Shown here: positions 2,907 through 11,855 of the stretch, piece by piece
Position numbering within the stretch: the first letter of the stretch is position 1
Layout: every line of letters begins with the position of its first letter
Sequence record: MT161459.1
Reading direction: 5' to 3' (one strand)
Length of the DNA stretch: 64,000 bases
Notes under the pieces: model-generated
Told to the model about the DNA's origin: nothing
Seen by the model: the letters and a program-made list of their open reading frames with translations, nothing else
Database searches by the model: none
Position numbers and translations under genes: made by a program

Positions 2907-3338
2907 ATGCAAAACCTAGCAAGTCTCTACGTCGGTATGGTAGAGCACATTATGGAATTTCAAAAAGATCGAACCGACATCGATCCACGATGCTACTGCA
3001 AAGAAGCGTTCCTTCGGGATTGCAGGACAATTTCTATCGATATGGGTAGAATGACTTGCAAATCTGTAGCGGCAATGACCCTTGCTCAAAAGCATTGCGG
3101 AGCTGTTGTCGTTATGAATGGAGCTCTTCGAGATTGGATCCTGGGACACCCTGGCATTGATCGGAGTCGAGTATTCACAGCAAGGGACTTTATCAAAGAG
3201 CTGCAGGAGAATGGATCTCATTACCGTATTGTGGTAATCGATGAGCCTAAATTCATCTCTGAGAAAATGGTTCGCGAGATCGTCAAGTTGTCTGCCGACA
3301 CAGGCGTGGAACATATCGTTCGTCTTGGAACACAATGA
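2907..3338 (+). CDS. hypothetical protein with degenerate P-loop NTPase-like motifs
   Basis: GRMTCKS (Walker A-like) and IVVIDEP (Walker B-like); GAGG RBS. Confidence 0.6.
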   Translation: MQNLASLYVGMVEHIMEFQKDRTDIDPRCYCKEAFLRDCRTISIDMGRMTCKSVAAMTLAQKHCGAVVVMNGALRDWILGHPGIDRSRVFTARDFIKELQENGSHYRIVVIDEPKFISEKMVREIVKLSADTGVEHIVRLGTQ

Positions 3339-3343
3339 ACAAA

Positions 3344-3440
3344 GGAAGCGTGGCAGAGTCCGGCTTATTGCAACTGACTTGAAATCAGTCGACGGTGGCA
3401 ATCCCATCGTCCGTGGGTTCAAATCCTACCGCTTCCGCCA
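3344..3440 (+). tRNA. tRNA-Ser(TGA)
   Basis: GGAAGCG/CGCTTCC, ACTGA-CTTGAAA-TCAGT, long variable arm, CCA. Confidence 0.95.
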
Positions 3441-3446
3441 AACAAT

Positions 3447-3511
3447 GAGCTCTTAGGTTAGTGAAAACCGCTGGCTGTCCAATGCCAGAGACGCGTAAGC
3501 AGAGCTCGCCA
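3447..3511 (+). ncRNA. tRNA-like RNA with 8-nt anticodon loop and vestigial T arm
   Basis: Perfect GAGCTCT/AGAGCTC + G-CCA; D arm GGTT-AGTGAA-AACC; CTGGC-TGTCCAAT-GCCAG; T arm reduced to GC-GTAA-GC. Confidence 0.65.
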
Positions 3512-3516
3512 AACAC

Positions 3517-3601
3517 GCGGATGTGGTGAAATTGGCAGTCACACTAGATTTAGGATCTAGCGCCTTCGGGCATGTCGGTTCGAGTCCGACCATCCGCACC
3601 A
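3517..3601 (+). tRNA. tRNA-Leu(TAG)
   Basis: GCGGATG/CATCCGC, CTAGA-TTTAGGA-TCTAG, variable arm, CCA. Confidence 0.95.
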
Positions 3602-3608
3602 GAATTAC

Positions 3609-3634
3609 AAGAGCCCATATGGGCTCTTTTTGTT
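3609..3634 (+). terminator. intrinsic terminator after the tRNA run
   Basis: AAGAGCCC-ATAT-GGGCTCTT + U tract. Confidence 0.85.
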
Positions 3635-3637
3635 GCC

Positions 3638-3644
3638 CTAAATA
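3638..3644 (+). promoter_or_regulatory. putative late promoter CTAAATA (also 11669, 17479, 17872, 33568, 45395, 56370, 62010)
   Basis: Recurs in intergenic positions shortly upstream of starts; resembles T4 gp55 late promoter TATAAATA. Confidence 0.6.
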
Positions 3645-3662
3645 CAAGAAAAGGAGATCGTA

Positions 3663-4052
3663 ATGGACTTTGCAAACTTTTCTAGTACACAGTCTAAGTC
3701 ACCGGCCATCGGTAATCTCATTACCAAGTTGCTAAAGAGTGTTCCGTACGTTCACCACGAGCATCTGACTACTACGTCATACGAACGTCATATCACCCTT
3801 CAACAGTATTACGAAGGGATGCCAGGAGTAGTCGATACGCTAGCGGAAGCTAGTATTGCTCGTGGGTATCCACAGAGTTTCGATGCTCAGTTCAATCTGA
3901 TATCATTCGAGCAACTCTTAAACGACGCGATGTCGGAGTGTAATGCAGTTCACAAGATTCTCGAGAAAGATGGTATGTGGGATCTGACCAATGCTCTGGA
4001 AGATATCATGACCTTCATTTCATCCGTACAGTACAAATTGCGTTTGAAATAG
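3663..4052 (+). CDS. ferritin/Dps-like four-helix protein
   Basis: HHEHL...YERH..LQQYYE....D.LAE ferritin-like pattern; AGGAG RBS. Confidence 0.65.
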   Translation: MDFANFSSTQSKSPAIGNLITKLLKSVPYVHHEHLTTTSYERHITLQQYYEGMPGVVDTLAEASIARGYPQSFDAQFNLISFEQLLNDAMSECNAVHKILEKDGMWDLTNALEDIMTFISSVQYKLRLK

Positions 4053-4976: not shown

Positions 4977-5056
4977 GTGTTCTTTGTAAGTCTCAGTTGG
5001 AAGAGCTGCTTGGCCGAAACCAAGCGGAGGCGTGTTCGAATCGCGCCTTAGAACAC
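4977..5056 (+). ncRNA. tRNA-like element / pseudo-tRNA without CCA
   Basis: D-like TCTC-AGTTGGAA-GAGC, GCTTGG-CCGAAA-CCAAGC arm, canonical T arm GCGTG-TTCGAAT-CGCGC, outer stem GTGTTCT/AGAACAC. Confidence 0.6.
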
Positions 5057-5125
5057 TTTATTATCGAGGAGACTTTGTGTACGAAGTTCTGTTACTTCAT
5101 TAGAGTATTCTAATGGAGATCCAAA

Positions 5126-7394: not shown

Positions 7395-8789
7395 ATGTCA
7401 ATGTTGTTCGATGCAATGTCTGAAAAAGACGCCCGCACTATGAACGGTGCAATCACGCACTCCACATCCGGTCAAGCCAACGTAGACTTGTTCTTCATCG
7501 TTGGCGCTTCTCGCGGCAAGAAAATTCGCGCTGAGTTTGCCAAAGCATATCGCGAGAATATGGACTACGCTGTCCGCATTCTTCAATGGGCGCGCGACGT
7601 TCGTGGTGGTGCTGGTGAGCGCGGTATCTTCATCGATTTGCTCCGCACCCTGTACACTCTGAATCGTGCGCATGCAGTATCCATTCTGTATAAGACTCCA
7701 GAGATTGGCCGCTGGAAGGATGTGGTTGAGATGTTCAACTCTCCTCTGCGCGCGGAAGTTCTGGATATGTTAGAGTTCGCTCTGCGTTCCGAGGACAGTC
7801 TGGCTGCTAAGTGGATCCCGCGTAAAGGTCCGGTAGCAAGCGCTCTGGCTCGCCGCATGAAGTGGAGCTCTAAACAGCTTCGTCAGACGCTGGTTGCTCT
7901 GAGCAACACAGTTGAGCAGAAGATGTGCGCGCGTCAGTGGAACGACATTGATTTCAGTAAGCTCCCGTCGATCGCATCCAGTCGCTACCAGAAGGCGTTC
8001 CATCGCCAAGCTCCAACCGCGTACACCAAGTACCTGGAGAGTCTGGAGAAAGGCGAGACCAAGATCAATGCCGGCGCCATCTATCCGCACACTATCGTCG
8101 GGAATCTGAGCAATGGCGTAGCTGCTGCTGCAGAGGCTCAGTGGAAAGCTCTTCCGAACTACATGGAAGGTACCAATGAGCGAATCCTGCCAGTGGTTGA
8201 CGTTTCTGGATCCATGAGCTGTCCGGCCGGCGGCAGCGGTTCGGTTAGTTGCATGACCGTAGCCATTTCGCTGGGTTTGTACATCTCCGAGCGCAATGAA
8301 GGGATTTTCCACAACCAGTTTGTGACGTTCAGCGAAGAACCAACATTCGTGACCCTGACCAAGCCGACTCTCCAAGGCCGTTGCAGCGAGATGTCTCGTT
8401 CGGATTGGGGTTACAATACCGATCTGCAGCGCACATTCTCTATCCTGTTGGATCGTGCAGTCAAATGCGCAGTCCCGCAAGATCAAATGCCGACCAAGAT
8501 CCTGATCTTGTCCGACATGGAGTTCGACGCAGCGTGTGATCGTGCCACCAACTACGACGCCATTGAGCGTAAGTATGCCGCCGCAGGATACGAGATGCCA
8601 TCCATCGTATTCTGGAACCTGAATGCTCGTGCCGGCAATGTACCAGTCAAGGCAGGCGTTCGCAACACTGCTCTGATCTCGGGTTTCTCTCCAGCTATCT
8701 TGACTTCTGTTCTGGGATGTCAGACAATGACTCCATTGTCAGTCATGCAAGACGCGATTATGAAAGATCGCTACGACTGGATTGTCTAA
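7395..8789 (+). CDS. DUF2828/TROVE(Ro60)-like helical protein with C-terminal vWA domain
   Basis: DLFF.VGASRG, RDVRGGAGER, LAAKWIPR, MIDAS DVSGS, ILSDMEFD, IVFWNL. Confidence 0.8.
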   Translation: MSMLFDAMSEKDARTMNGAITHSTSGQANVDLFFIVGASRGKKIRAEFAKAYRENMDYAVRILQWARDVRGGAGERGIFIDLLRTLYTLNRAHAVSILYKTPEIGRWKDVVEMFNSPLRAEVLDMLEFALRSEDSLAAKWIPRKGPVASALARRMKWSSKQLRQTLVALSNTVEQKMCARQWNDIDFSKLPSIASSRYQKAFHRQAPTAYTKYLESLEKGETKINAGAIYPHTIVGNLSNGVAAAAEAQWKALPNYMEGTNERILPVVDVSGSMSCPAGGSGSVSCMTVAISLGLYISERNEGIFHNQFVTFSEEPTFVTLTKPTLQGRCSEMSRSDWGYNTDLQRTFSILLDRAVKCAVPQDQMPTKILILSDMEFDAACDRATNYDAIERKYAAAGYEMPSIVFWNLNARAGNVPVKAGVRNTALISGFSPAILTSVLGCQTMTPLSVMQDAIMKDRYDWIV

Positions 8790-11720: not shown

Positions 11721-11855
11721 ATAATACCGCGATCGAGTAGCTCAATGGTAGAGCAACGTAAAATGCATCCTGTCAAGGATGAATTCTGCAATCAAATCGC
11801 CTGTTAAGCCGTAGGTTGTGTGGTTCGAATCCGCGCCTCGATCGCAGTATTATTT
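11721..11855 (+). ncRNA. tRNA-Asn(GTT)-derived RNA with 40-nt insertion in the anticodon stem and extended acceptor stem
   Basis: GATCGAG/CTCGATC acceptor, GCTC-AATGGTA-GAGC D arm, ACG[40 nt]GC-CTGTTAA-GCCGT, T loop TTCGAAT, no CCA, flanks ATAATAC/GTATTAT pair. Confidence 0.75.

Follow-up and report, generated by a model that had tools for sequence, protein, structure and literature searches.

A T-arm-less, tRNA-like element in the tRNA cluster of Aeromonas phage Ahp1 and its closest relatives

Introduction

Phage tRNA clusters are now viewed as weapons in a conflict over host tRNAs and, to our knowledge, only complete tRNAs have been studied. One of these, the tRNA-Lys of phage T5, reportedly neutralises PARIS, a defence that cleaves tRNA. 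The elbow of a tRNA is read by EF-Tu, the ribosome and the specificity domain of RNase P, and YrlA, one of the tRNA-shaped noncoding mimics (YrlA and Y RNAs) that partner with Ro60 (Rsr), imitates this D/T elbow. The +1 suppressors SufA6, SufB2 and SufJ are complete tRNAs, with U33 and the entire elbow in place, and they and engineered quadruplet decoders have an anticodon loop of 8 nt. In the tRNA region of T4, the species 1 and 2 RNAs (rnaC and rnaD, 139 and 119 nt) are small RNAs other than tRNAs whose genes lie head-to-tail with those of tRNAs at distances of 1–6 nt, and rnaC keeps the canonical T arm CCGGG-UUCGAAU-CCCGG. T4-like phages also carry tRNAscan-SE pseudogenes, which are aberrant tRNA-like genes within tRNA clusters (PMC1524935).

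Cloverleaves that lack the T arm altogether are known from the mitochondria of nematodes and other metazoa. They combine an acceptor stem of 7 bp with a D arm, an anticodon arm and a replacement of about 12 nt for the variable loop and T arm (TV replacement), for a total of about 55–65 nt. Their anticodon loop has 7 nt with U33, their CCA is not encoded, and they are served by a dedicated EF-Tu and by an RNase P and an L1 stalk that evolved along with them (PMC4919913). In bacteria, both RNase P and the ribosome hold on to the elbow, and tRNAs that lack one are known only together with co-evolved partners (PMC4919913). In our full-text searches of the published literature, no phage was reported to carry a tRNA-like gene without the T arm. 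Here we describe a 65-nt element of this build in the tRNA cluster of an Aeromonas phage, which we class with the tRNA-like small RNA genes or pseudo-tRNAs of phage tRNA clusters.

A truncated cloverleaf between tRNA-Ser and tRNA-Leu

The window, by which we mean the whole stretch of 64,000 nt that was analysed (positions 1–64000), matched Aeromonas phage Ahp1_CNU-2021 (MT161459.1; 218 kb; Straboviridae) at 100% identity. The tRNA cluster of Ahp1 occupies the first 5 kb of the window on the + strand, where ARAGORN called 12 tRNAs and Rfam 13; every tRNA of the cluster encodes its CCA, and adjacent tRNAs are often just 5–10 nt apart. The GenBank record contains four ‘tRNA-Pseudo’ features, but the 65-nt element is not among its annotated features, and nothing is annotated there between tRNA-Ser (3344–3437 in the record) and tRNA-Leu (3517–3598 in the record). 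The features of the locus, with the evidence for each, are as follows.

2907–3338: ORF upstream of tRNA-Ser(UGA), flanking gene
3344–3440, + strand: tRNA-Ser(UGA) with encoded CCA, upstream neighbour (ARAGORN, Rfam)
3441–3446, + strand: 5′ spacer AACAAU, with U at −1 (invariant in all copies)
3447–3511, + strand: whole 65-nt tRNA-like unit (fold, ARAGORN -mt, pattern scan against shuffles, covariance model R1)
3447–3453, + strand: acceptor stem 5′ strand GAGCUCU, pairing with 3501–3507 (sequence, fold)
3456–3469, + strand: D arm GGUU/AACC with a 6-nt loop AGUGAA, without G18 G19 (sequence, fold)
3471–3488, + strand: anticodon-like arm CUGGC/GCCAG with an 8-nt loop UGUCCAAU at 3476–3483 (sequence, fold)
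3489–3500, + strand: AGAC and the stub GC-GUAA-GC (3493–3500), 12 nt that replace the variable loop and T arm (sequence, fold)
3501–3507, + strand: acceptor stem 3′ strand AGAGCUC (sequence, fold)
3508–3511, + strand: discriminator G73 and encoded CCA (sequence)
3512–3516, + strand: 3′ spacer AACAC, AAUAU in relatives (sequence comparison)
3517–3601, + strand: tRNA-Leu(UAG), downstream neighbour (ARAGORN, Rfam)
3609–3638, + strand: terminator-like hairpin and T run directly after tRNA-Leu, end of the Ser–element–Leu transcription unit
3663–4052: DUF5856 gene, downstream of tRNA-Leu
7395–8789: Ro60-like DUF2828/DUF7788 gene of Ahp1
11731–11843: interrupted tRNA-like RNA in Ahp1

The element, a single copy in the 218-kb genome, exactly fills the gap between tRNA-Ser(UGA) and tRNA-Leu(UAG) on the tRNA strand, with spacers of 6 nt (5′) and 5 nt (3′); the 5′ spacer AACAAU also precedes tRNA-Leu in phage Aeh1. 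A sequence-only reading had claimed a 65-nt tRNA mimic at 3447–3511, and we found the sequence and all the claimed arms to be as it described. U8 and A9 follow the acceptor strand, and a single linker G separates the D stem from the anticodon stem. The minimum-free-energy fold was the same cloverleaf (−23.9 kcal/mol, 61% of the ensemble, z = −2.4), including the GUAA-capped 2-bp stem and an unpaired terminal GCCA. The word ‘mimic’ also proved apt, as build and placement are those of a tRNA gene, the T arm and the D-loop GG are missing and the unit is conserved in its clade. With neither a T loop nor a D-loop GG, a tRNA elbow cannot form.

Measured against a canonical tRNA, the element has the 7-bp acceptor stem, the discriminator and CCA, U8 and the operon position; it lacks the 5-bp T stem, the 7-nt T-psi-C loop and D-loop G18 G19, and it does not score with the tRNA models. 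The motif GGTTCRANTCC is absent from the element, where the best match has 3 mismatches. Measured against T-armless tRNAs, its 12 nt at 3489–3500 fall within the 6–12 nt of a variable loop/T arm replacement, but it has neither the conserved 7-nt loop with U33 and purine 37 nor a matching elongation factor in the phage.

Detection and chance expectation

Standard searches overlook this unit. ARAGORN in bacterial mode did not call it even at lowered thresholds, and Rfam cmscan, both at the gathering threshold and at E ≤ 10, left it unmatched, including by RF00005 and Y RNA. By contrast, ARAGORN in metazoan-mitochondrial mode called exactly 3447–3511 as ‘mtRNA-?(Gly|Trp)(tcca)’, in a mode noisy enough to yield about 16 extra calls outside the tRNA cluster in 64 kb. 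Units of this kind thus escape both the standard tRNA finders and Rfam.

A bare 7-bp stem followed by NCCA is common by chance, at about 27 per shuffled window. We therefore scanned for the full pattern, in which the acceptor stem and NCCA are accompanied by a D arm, an anticodon arm whose loop has 7–8 nt and a short TV region. Counting both strands, this pattern occurred once in the real window, at 3447–3511, compared with 0.07 times per shuffled 64 kb. Given the rarity of the full pattern, the correct strand and the exact fit into a gap between two tRNAs with tRNA-type spacers, a chance occurrence of the cloverleaf is excluded.

Other unusual units lie in the same region. Further odd tRNA-like remnants were seen in the Ahp1 cluster, and the cluster and those of its relatives hold at least four other tRNA-sized, stem-closed units. 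Separately, a hairpin after tRNA-Trp has the arms GAGATCT/AGATCTC, which are near-identical to the acceptor arms of the element.

The element is young and confined to the Ahp1 clade

A blastn search of the phage collection (distant mode, 3438–3520) returned the source record Ahp1 and otherwise chance matches. A word search with the DUF5856 gene found relatives of three kinds, at 96%, 88% and 60% identity. In the 96% relatives (L006–L014), covariance model R1 placed the element at the same position in all nine metagenome contigs, which come from different samples, and the element was also present in four sequencing runs from four studies (X8, X11, X16 and X17). The 88% relative (L015) has tRNA-Ser(UGA), a 7-nt spacer and a different tRNA(UAG) allele, without the element. 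In the 60% relative (L016) and in the phages Aeh1, PX29 and avDM12, which are about 53% identical, tRNA-Ser(GCU) directly precedes tRNA-Leu. The element was absent from L015, L016, Aeh1, PX29, phiAS5 and avDM12. Scans of IMG/VR and JGI with patterns for the anticodon arm, for the D arm and for a degenerate arm gave zero or chance matches among the matches listed, none of which had the remainder of the element, and a search of IMG/VR with the neighbour gene gave no match. Its presence in the 96% relatives, together with its absence from the 88% relative and all more distant ones, makes the element a young, clade-specific unit of the Ahp1 clade. The conservation search that the sequence-only reading had called for thus found an element almost unchanged in nine contigs and four runs and confined to this clade.

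Two haplotypes were seen, which differ solely at 3477 (G/A) and 3483 (U/A), both of them loop sites. The Ahp1 haplotype, with the loop UGUCCAAU, is carried by Ahp1 and runs X8, X11 and X16; the majority haplotype, with the loop UAUCCAAA, by the nine contigs and run X17. The UCCAA core of the loop is invariant across copies. In the majority loop the terminal bases can pair as U-A; RNAfold then predicts 6 bp for the stem and 6 nt for the loop, and ARAGORN -mt reads a 2-base ‘anticodon’, ‘cc’. The 8-nt anticodon loop that had been proposed therefore holds for the Ahp1 haplotype but is not conserved, as the predicted loop of the majority haplotype has 6 nt. Reading the loop instead as an extra 5′ U and a 7-nt loop leaves U33, CCA and A37 constant and confines the variation to positions 32 and 38. 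Of the 14 sampled copies, 13 keep all 18 base pairs; the exception is contig L008, in which C4>A breaks the acceptor pair C4-G69 as an uncompensated singleton. Compensatory changes in the stems were found in none of the sampled copies, so the fold has no covariation support.

Low variability in a recombining region

We counted variable sites between Ahp1 and five collinear relatives. The element varied at 3 of 65 sites (4.6%), compared with 33 of 129 third codon positions in the DUF5856 gene (Fisher p = 3e-4) and 70 of 143 in the ORF at 2907–3338 (Fisher p = 2e-11), which makes it about 5- to 10-fold less variable than the neighbouring third codon positions (26–49%). The spacer between a coding sequence and tRNA-Met varied at 6 of 39 sites, the 3′ spacer of the element at 2 of 5 and tRNA-Leu, between the same genomes, at 18 of 85. 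The noncoding stretch 3602–3662 was as invariant as the element (3 of 61). Across ten loci, the element matched the best-kept true tRNAs (Gly 2.7%, SerGGA 3.3%, Met 1.3%), whereas several true tRNAs varied at 21–43% of their sites, with whole alleles swapped.

The divergence around the element comes in blocks, at 3514–3572 (the 5′ two thirds of tRNA-Leu) and at 3701–3716 in the downstream gene. There are at least three alleles of the adjoining tRNA-Ser and two of tRNA-Leu, the 5′ part of the Ahp1 tRNA-Leu is a PX29/AsFcp-type allele, and the element is bordered on both sides by recombination breakpoints. As the region is a mosaic and 3602–3662 is equally invariant, low variability may partly reflect a shallow local genealogy. 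The low variability of the element is thus suggestive of purifying selection but does not prove it.

Decoding is not expected of the element

The sequence-only reading had offered, besides a decoy, a T-armless tRNA that causes frameshifts. Such a molecule would be charged with Trp or Gly and would perhaps read the quadruplet UGGA with +1 frameshifts. It could draw on the 8-nt loop of the Ahp1 haplotype, on the anticodon ‘tcca’ that ARAGORN -mt reports there and on G73, A9 and CCA, which are major Trp determinants. The bacterial Trp identity set has G73, A9 and C34-C35-A36 as major elements, plus A1-U72, G2-C71, G3-C70, G4-C69 and G5-C68 (PMC9976931 Table 1). With its loop read as U-[R-U-CCA-A-N], the element has G73, A9, CCA and G3-C70, but it differs at pairs 1-72 (G-C), 2-71 (A-U), 4-69 (C-G) and 5-68 (U-A). 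Bacterial Gly identity rests on U73, C2-G71, G3-C70, C35 and C36 (PMC9976931), of which the element lacks U73 and C2-G71, having G as discriminator and A-U at pair 2-71. Bacterial Asp identity comprises G73, G10, G34-U35-C36 and C38 (PMC9976931). We rejected a reading as Asp, as the GUC of the Ahp1 haplotype is AUC in the majority haplotype; that register also lacks a purine 37.

The frameshifting proposal is not supported. The 8-nt loop is limited to one haplotype, the majority loop being predicted to close by U-A, and in a 2+4+2 reading position 33 is G or A rather than U. A gene of the EF-Tu family (PF00009, GTP_EFTU) was absent from the whole phage record, with control genomes positive. 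Ahp1 already carries a normal tRNA-Gly(UCC) and tRNA-Trp(CCA), and tRNA-Asp(GUC) occurs in close relatives. Efficient reading of UGGA would, by inference, also shift the frame at many Trp codons. Since the elbow cannot form and is read by EF-Tu, the ribosome and the RNase P specificity domain, an RNA from the element would not be a decoder, and the missing elbow, the lack of a phage EF-Tu and the presence of normal tRNA-Gly and tRNA-Trp make decoding or frameshifting unlikely. We give almost no credence to a charged, decoding tRNA at this locus.

Origin of the element

Among 144 distinct tRNAs from all loci, the nearest to the element were tRNA-Gly(UCC) of phiAS5 and of L016, with a model score of 19 bits. 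The alignment score was about 4 SD above the mean, with the gap falling on GGGTTCGATTCCC, the T arm. The similarity was, however, 0.30 per nt compared with a mean of 0.40 between different tRNA species. The comparison is thus no more than suggestive of tRNA-Gly(UCC) as a possible parent, because tRNAs that differ in specificity are at least as alike among themselves. We also considered descent from tRNA-Ser(GCU), which occupies the same slot in Aeh1, PX29, avDM12 and L016, and rejected it for want of sequence similarity. The 8-nt string GCCAAACA ends both tRNA-Ser plus spacer and the element plus spacer, the trace expected when a ‘[tRNA-CCA-spacer]’ unit is inserted into a tandem array or lost from it.

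[quoted passage not shown] Genes of the GIY-YIG/NUMOD3, T5orf172/MUG113 and CapR kinds are present in the clusters of Ahp1 relatives. By analogy, it is plausible that an endonuclease cut at GGTTCRANTCC, followed by imprecise repair, removed the T arm. Absence of the motif did not correlate cleanly with escape from allele swapping: tRNA-SerGGA and tRNA-Met are invariant although they contain it, whereas tRNA-LysTTT lacks it and is variable.

Discussion

We favour, at a rough probability of 0.45, the reading that the element is a tRNA-derived, probably RNase-P-processed, non-decoding mimic that engages some tRNA-binding factor, for example as a decoy or sponge. Its structure, placement, clade-restricted presence and low variability are direct observations, to which we add a mechanism, covering transcription, processing, partner and origin, that we infer from the sequence. 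The element would be a derivative of a tRNA gene that has lost its T-psi-C arm and been kept in the Ser–Leu tRNA operon of the Ahp1 clade of Aeromonas phages, which are T4-like. There it would share with tRNA-Ser(UGA) and tRNA-Leu(UAG) a transcript that ends at the terminator at 3609. Even when the T arm is missing, RNase P accepts an acceptor helix of 7 bp that is preceded by U at −1 and ends in RCCA. Host RNase P could thus cut at G1 of the element, favoured by its 7-bp acceptor stem, the U at −1 and its GCCA 3′ end, and the 5-nt trailer left after RNase P cleavage of tRNA-Leu would be trimmed to CCA. From these substrate features and the terminator after tRNA-Leu, release of a stable, CCA-ended RNA of about 65 nt would be expected.

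Such an RNA would display the acceptor end of a tRNA together with an anticodon-like hairpin that holds the invariant UCCAA, a core that, together with G73, would supply the major bacterial Trp identity elements U33-CCA-A37. It may occupy a host tRNA-directed nuclease or defence protein, a synthetase or a modification enzyme. In a narrower version, which we consider unlikely as a whole, the element is a selected and processed elbow-less mimic whose G73-CCA end is possibly chargeable by TrpRS and which serves as a decoy for a host tRNA-directed factor, such as a defence nuclease, while remaining invisible to EF-Tu and the ribosome. The common changes among the copies are confined to the loop, and no stem pair has been lost except in the L008 singleton, which favours a mimic. 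The uncompensated acceptor mismatch in that contig, the lack of compensatory changes, the recent origin and the mosaic region with an equally invariant 3602–3662 count against it.

These same observations bear on the possibility that the element is a recent, functionless relic of a tRNA gene closest to the phage tRNA-Gly(UCC), with the T arm deleted and an insertion gained in the loop. Such a relic may still be excised, and the sameness of its copies would reflect youth and hitch-hiking in a mosaic region. Its confinement to one shallow clade, the gap on the T arm in the alignment with tRNA-Gly(UCC) of phiAS5 and L016, the uncompensated mismatch in one copy, the invariance of the adjacent noncoding stretch, the other odd remnants within the cluster and the precedent of tRNAscan pseudogenes in T4-like phages (PMC1524935) are all consistent with a relic. 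Nevertheless, 13 of 14 copies retain all 18 base pairs, the element varies 5- to 10-fold less than neighbouring third codon positions while the 3′ spacer and tRNA-Leu differ between the same genomes, and the resemblance to tRNA-Gly is no greater than is typical between tRNA species. We consider a relic the main rival account, somewhat less probable than a mimic, and if it is correct, the element documents the remodelling of tRNA genes in clusters rich in homing endonucleases.

The tight fit between both tRNAs, the tRNA-type spacers and the U at −1 would also suit a role in processing or stability, either as an extra RNase P site or as a structured separator that protects tRNA-Ser and tRNA-Leu in the precursor, and T4 keeps its stable non-tRNA species 1 and 2 RNAs beside tRNA-Arg. 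We regard this role as improbable, as the Ser–Leu pairs of relatives are 6–7 nt apart and are processed without such a unit, and mere punctuation needs neither a D arm nor an anticodon-like arm. Still less probable is a function at the DNA level, in which the inverted repeat GAGCTCT...AGAGCTC is a protein-binding or recombination site and the cloverleaf is incidental. In its favour, the arms are palindromic, forming two SacI-type palindromes at a distance of 47 bp, both borders are recombination breakpoints and the hairpin after tRNA-Trp has near-identical arms, but a DNA site leaves unexplained the encoded GCCA, the tRNA-type spacers and two more perfect helices inside the unit, placed as in a tRNA, in a full pattern expected 0.07 times per window.

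If the non-decoding mimic is the correct reading, the element would be the first T-arm-less cloverleaf reported outside mitochondria and a conserved phage RNA that separates binding by tRNA enzymes from use in translation. In the narrower version, it would represent a new class of phage small RNA, a decoy unable to disturb translation.

The mitochondrial T-armless tRNAs match it in architecture, with the same 7-bp acceptor stem, D arm, anticodon arm, short replacement and total length; the element differs from them in its loop of 8 or 6 nt, its encoded CCA, its bacterial host and the lack of an EF-Tu gene in the phage. In genomic setting it resembles the T4 species 1 and 2 RNAs, which likewise sit among tRNA genes, but these are longer and model R1, with filters off, had no match at rnaC or rnaD in the T4 tRNA region, so the element is not homologous to them. 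Compared with the tRNAscan-SE pseudogenes, the element lies below every standard tRNA model and looks constrained rather than decaying. Like YrlA it is tRNA-shaped, and Ahp1 has a Ro60-like gene, but the elbow that YrlA imitates is exactly the part that the element is missing, and neither a T loop nor a Ro-binding module is visible in it; it is neither a Y RNA nor a YrlA. Co-occurrence lent no support to a link with the Ro60-like DUF2828 gene, which L015 and Aeh1 carry although they lack the element. The likeness to SufA6, SufB2, SufJ and the engineered quadruplet decoders lies in the 8-nt loop and extends to the Ahp1 haplotype only; against these suppressors, the element is truncated and its 8-nt loop is not conserved. 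The analogy with T5 tRNA-Lys is functional and underlies the decoy reading, as both would be phage tRNA-type molecules in a conflict over host tRNAs. Molecules of the T5 type are nuclease-resistant, functional decoders that replace a cleaved tRNA, whereas the element could titrate a factor that acts on tRNA rather than replace the tRNA itself.

tRNA-like and structured units in and near the cluster

Several intergenic stretches of the Aeromonas phage Ahp1_CNU-2021 tRNA cluster, and two database features, have tRNA-like or structured character:

1988-2017, + strand: hairpin GAGAUCU/AGAUCUC followed by G, inside the 50-nt gap 3' of tRNA-Trp
2199-2270, + strand: 72-nt tRNA-like unit between tRNA-Lys(CUU) and tRNA-Lys(UUU)
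2692-2771, + strand: 80-nt gap with a long closed structure, between tRNA-Gln and tRNA-Ser(GGA)
4980-5057, + strand: 'tRNA-Pseudo' feature of the GenBank record
11731-11847, + strand: 'tRNA-Pseudo' feature, an interrupted tRNA-like RNA (Rfam tRNA match, 31 bits)

The arms of the 1988-2017 hairpin equal the acceptor arms of the T-arm-less element at 3447 at six of seven positions, with the single difference compensated, and its 16-nt loop includes CCCAAU. The C4>A variant of the 3447 element in the 96% relative L008 turns the 5' arm of that element into an exact copy of the hairpin's 5' arm. The hairpin is possibly a further-reduced paralogue of the 3447 element.

The 72-nt unit has an acceptor-type stem, ACCCGUU/GACGGGU, followed by A-CCA, and carries a 6-bp hairpin at the T-arm position; it lacks a usable anticodon arm. 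Three of the 96% relatives (L006, L008 and L011) and the 88% relative L015 share the unit in conserved form, with 3 of 72 sites variable, and it is missing in three other 96% relatives (L007, L010 and L012). The 2692-2771 gap, which varies at 25% of sites among the relatives, folds into a structure closed by GGUUGCA/UGCAACC (-27.6 kcal/mol, z = -4.4), part of which is called by ARAGORN -mt.

A further tRNA-like unit of about 90 nt lies between two tRNA-Asp genes in the relatives L006 and L016:

L006 1286-1384; L016 2772-2872: tRNA-like unit

Its AACAAU leader is the same as that of the 3447 element. This unit, for which ARAGORN gave no call, has the T arm CUGGA-AUCGAAU-UCCAG, an ACCA end and an anticodon-like loop, UCGUAAU, with C at position 33. 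Judging from synteny, the Ahp1 genome probably carries this unit as well, at its far end. The tRNA-Thr to tRNA-His gap, of 79-83 nt, recurs in phages PX29, Aeh1, phiAS5 and avDM12 and in L016, and holds small hairpins.

Annotation of the tRNA genes

The 4980-5057 feature is near-invariant in nine of ten relatives (1 of 78 sites). Upstream of 11731-11847, at a distance of 2.9 kb, is a gene of the DUF2828/DUF7788 (Ro60-vWA-like) type (7395-8789). Two genes labelled as pseudo-tRNAs in the GenBank record, 1907-1980 ('tRNA-Pseudo-CCA (Pro)') and 2772-2863 ('tRNA-Pseudo-GGA (Gly)'), are by ARAGORN and Rfam the normal tRNAs tRNA-Trp(CCA) (55.8 bits) and tRNA-Ser(GGA) (55.4 bits). The Aeh1 record AY266303.2 (locus L003) contains at L003 6927-7018 an intact tRNA-Tyr(GUA), unannotated there and identical to the avDM12 copy.

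Allele swaps beside the 3447 element

Both tRNAs flanking the 3447 element contain allele-swap blocks, at 3514-3572 (tRNA-Leu) and about 3345-3432 (tRNA-Ser), that end at their T arms or close by. The 5' two thirds of the Ahp1 tRNA-Leu differ from the closest relatives at 18 sites; its T arm and all sequence downstream are identical to theirs. On this pattern, the blocks look like gene-conversion tracts that begin around the T loop, such as have been described for the T4 homing endonuclease SegB.
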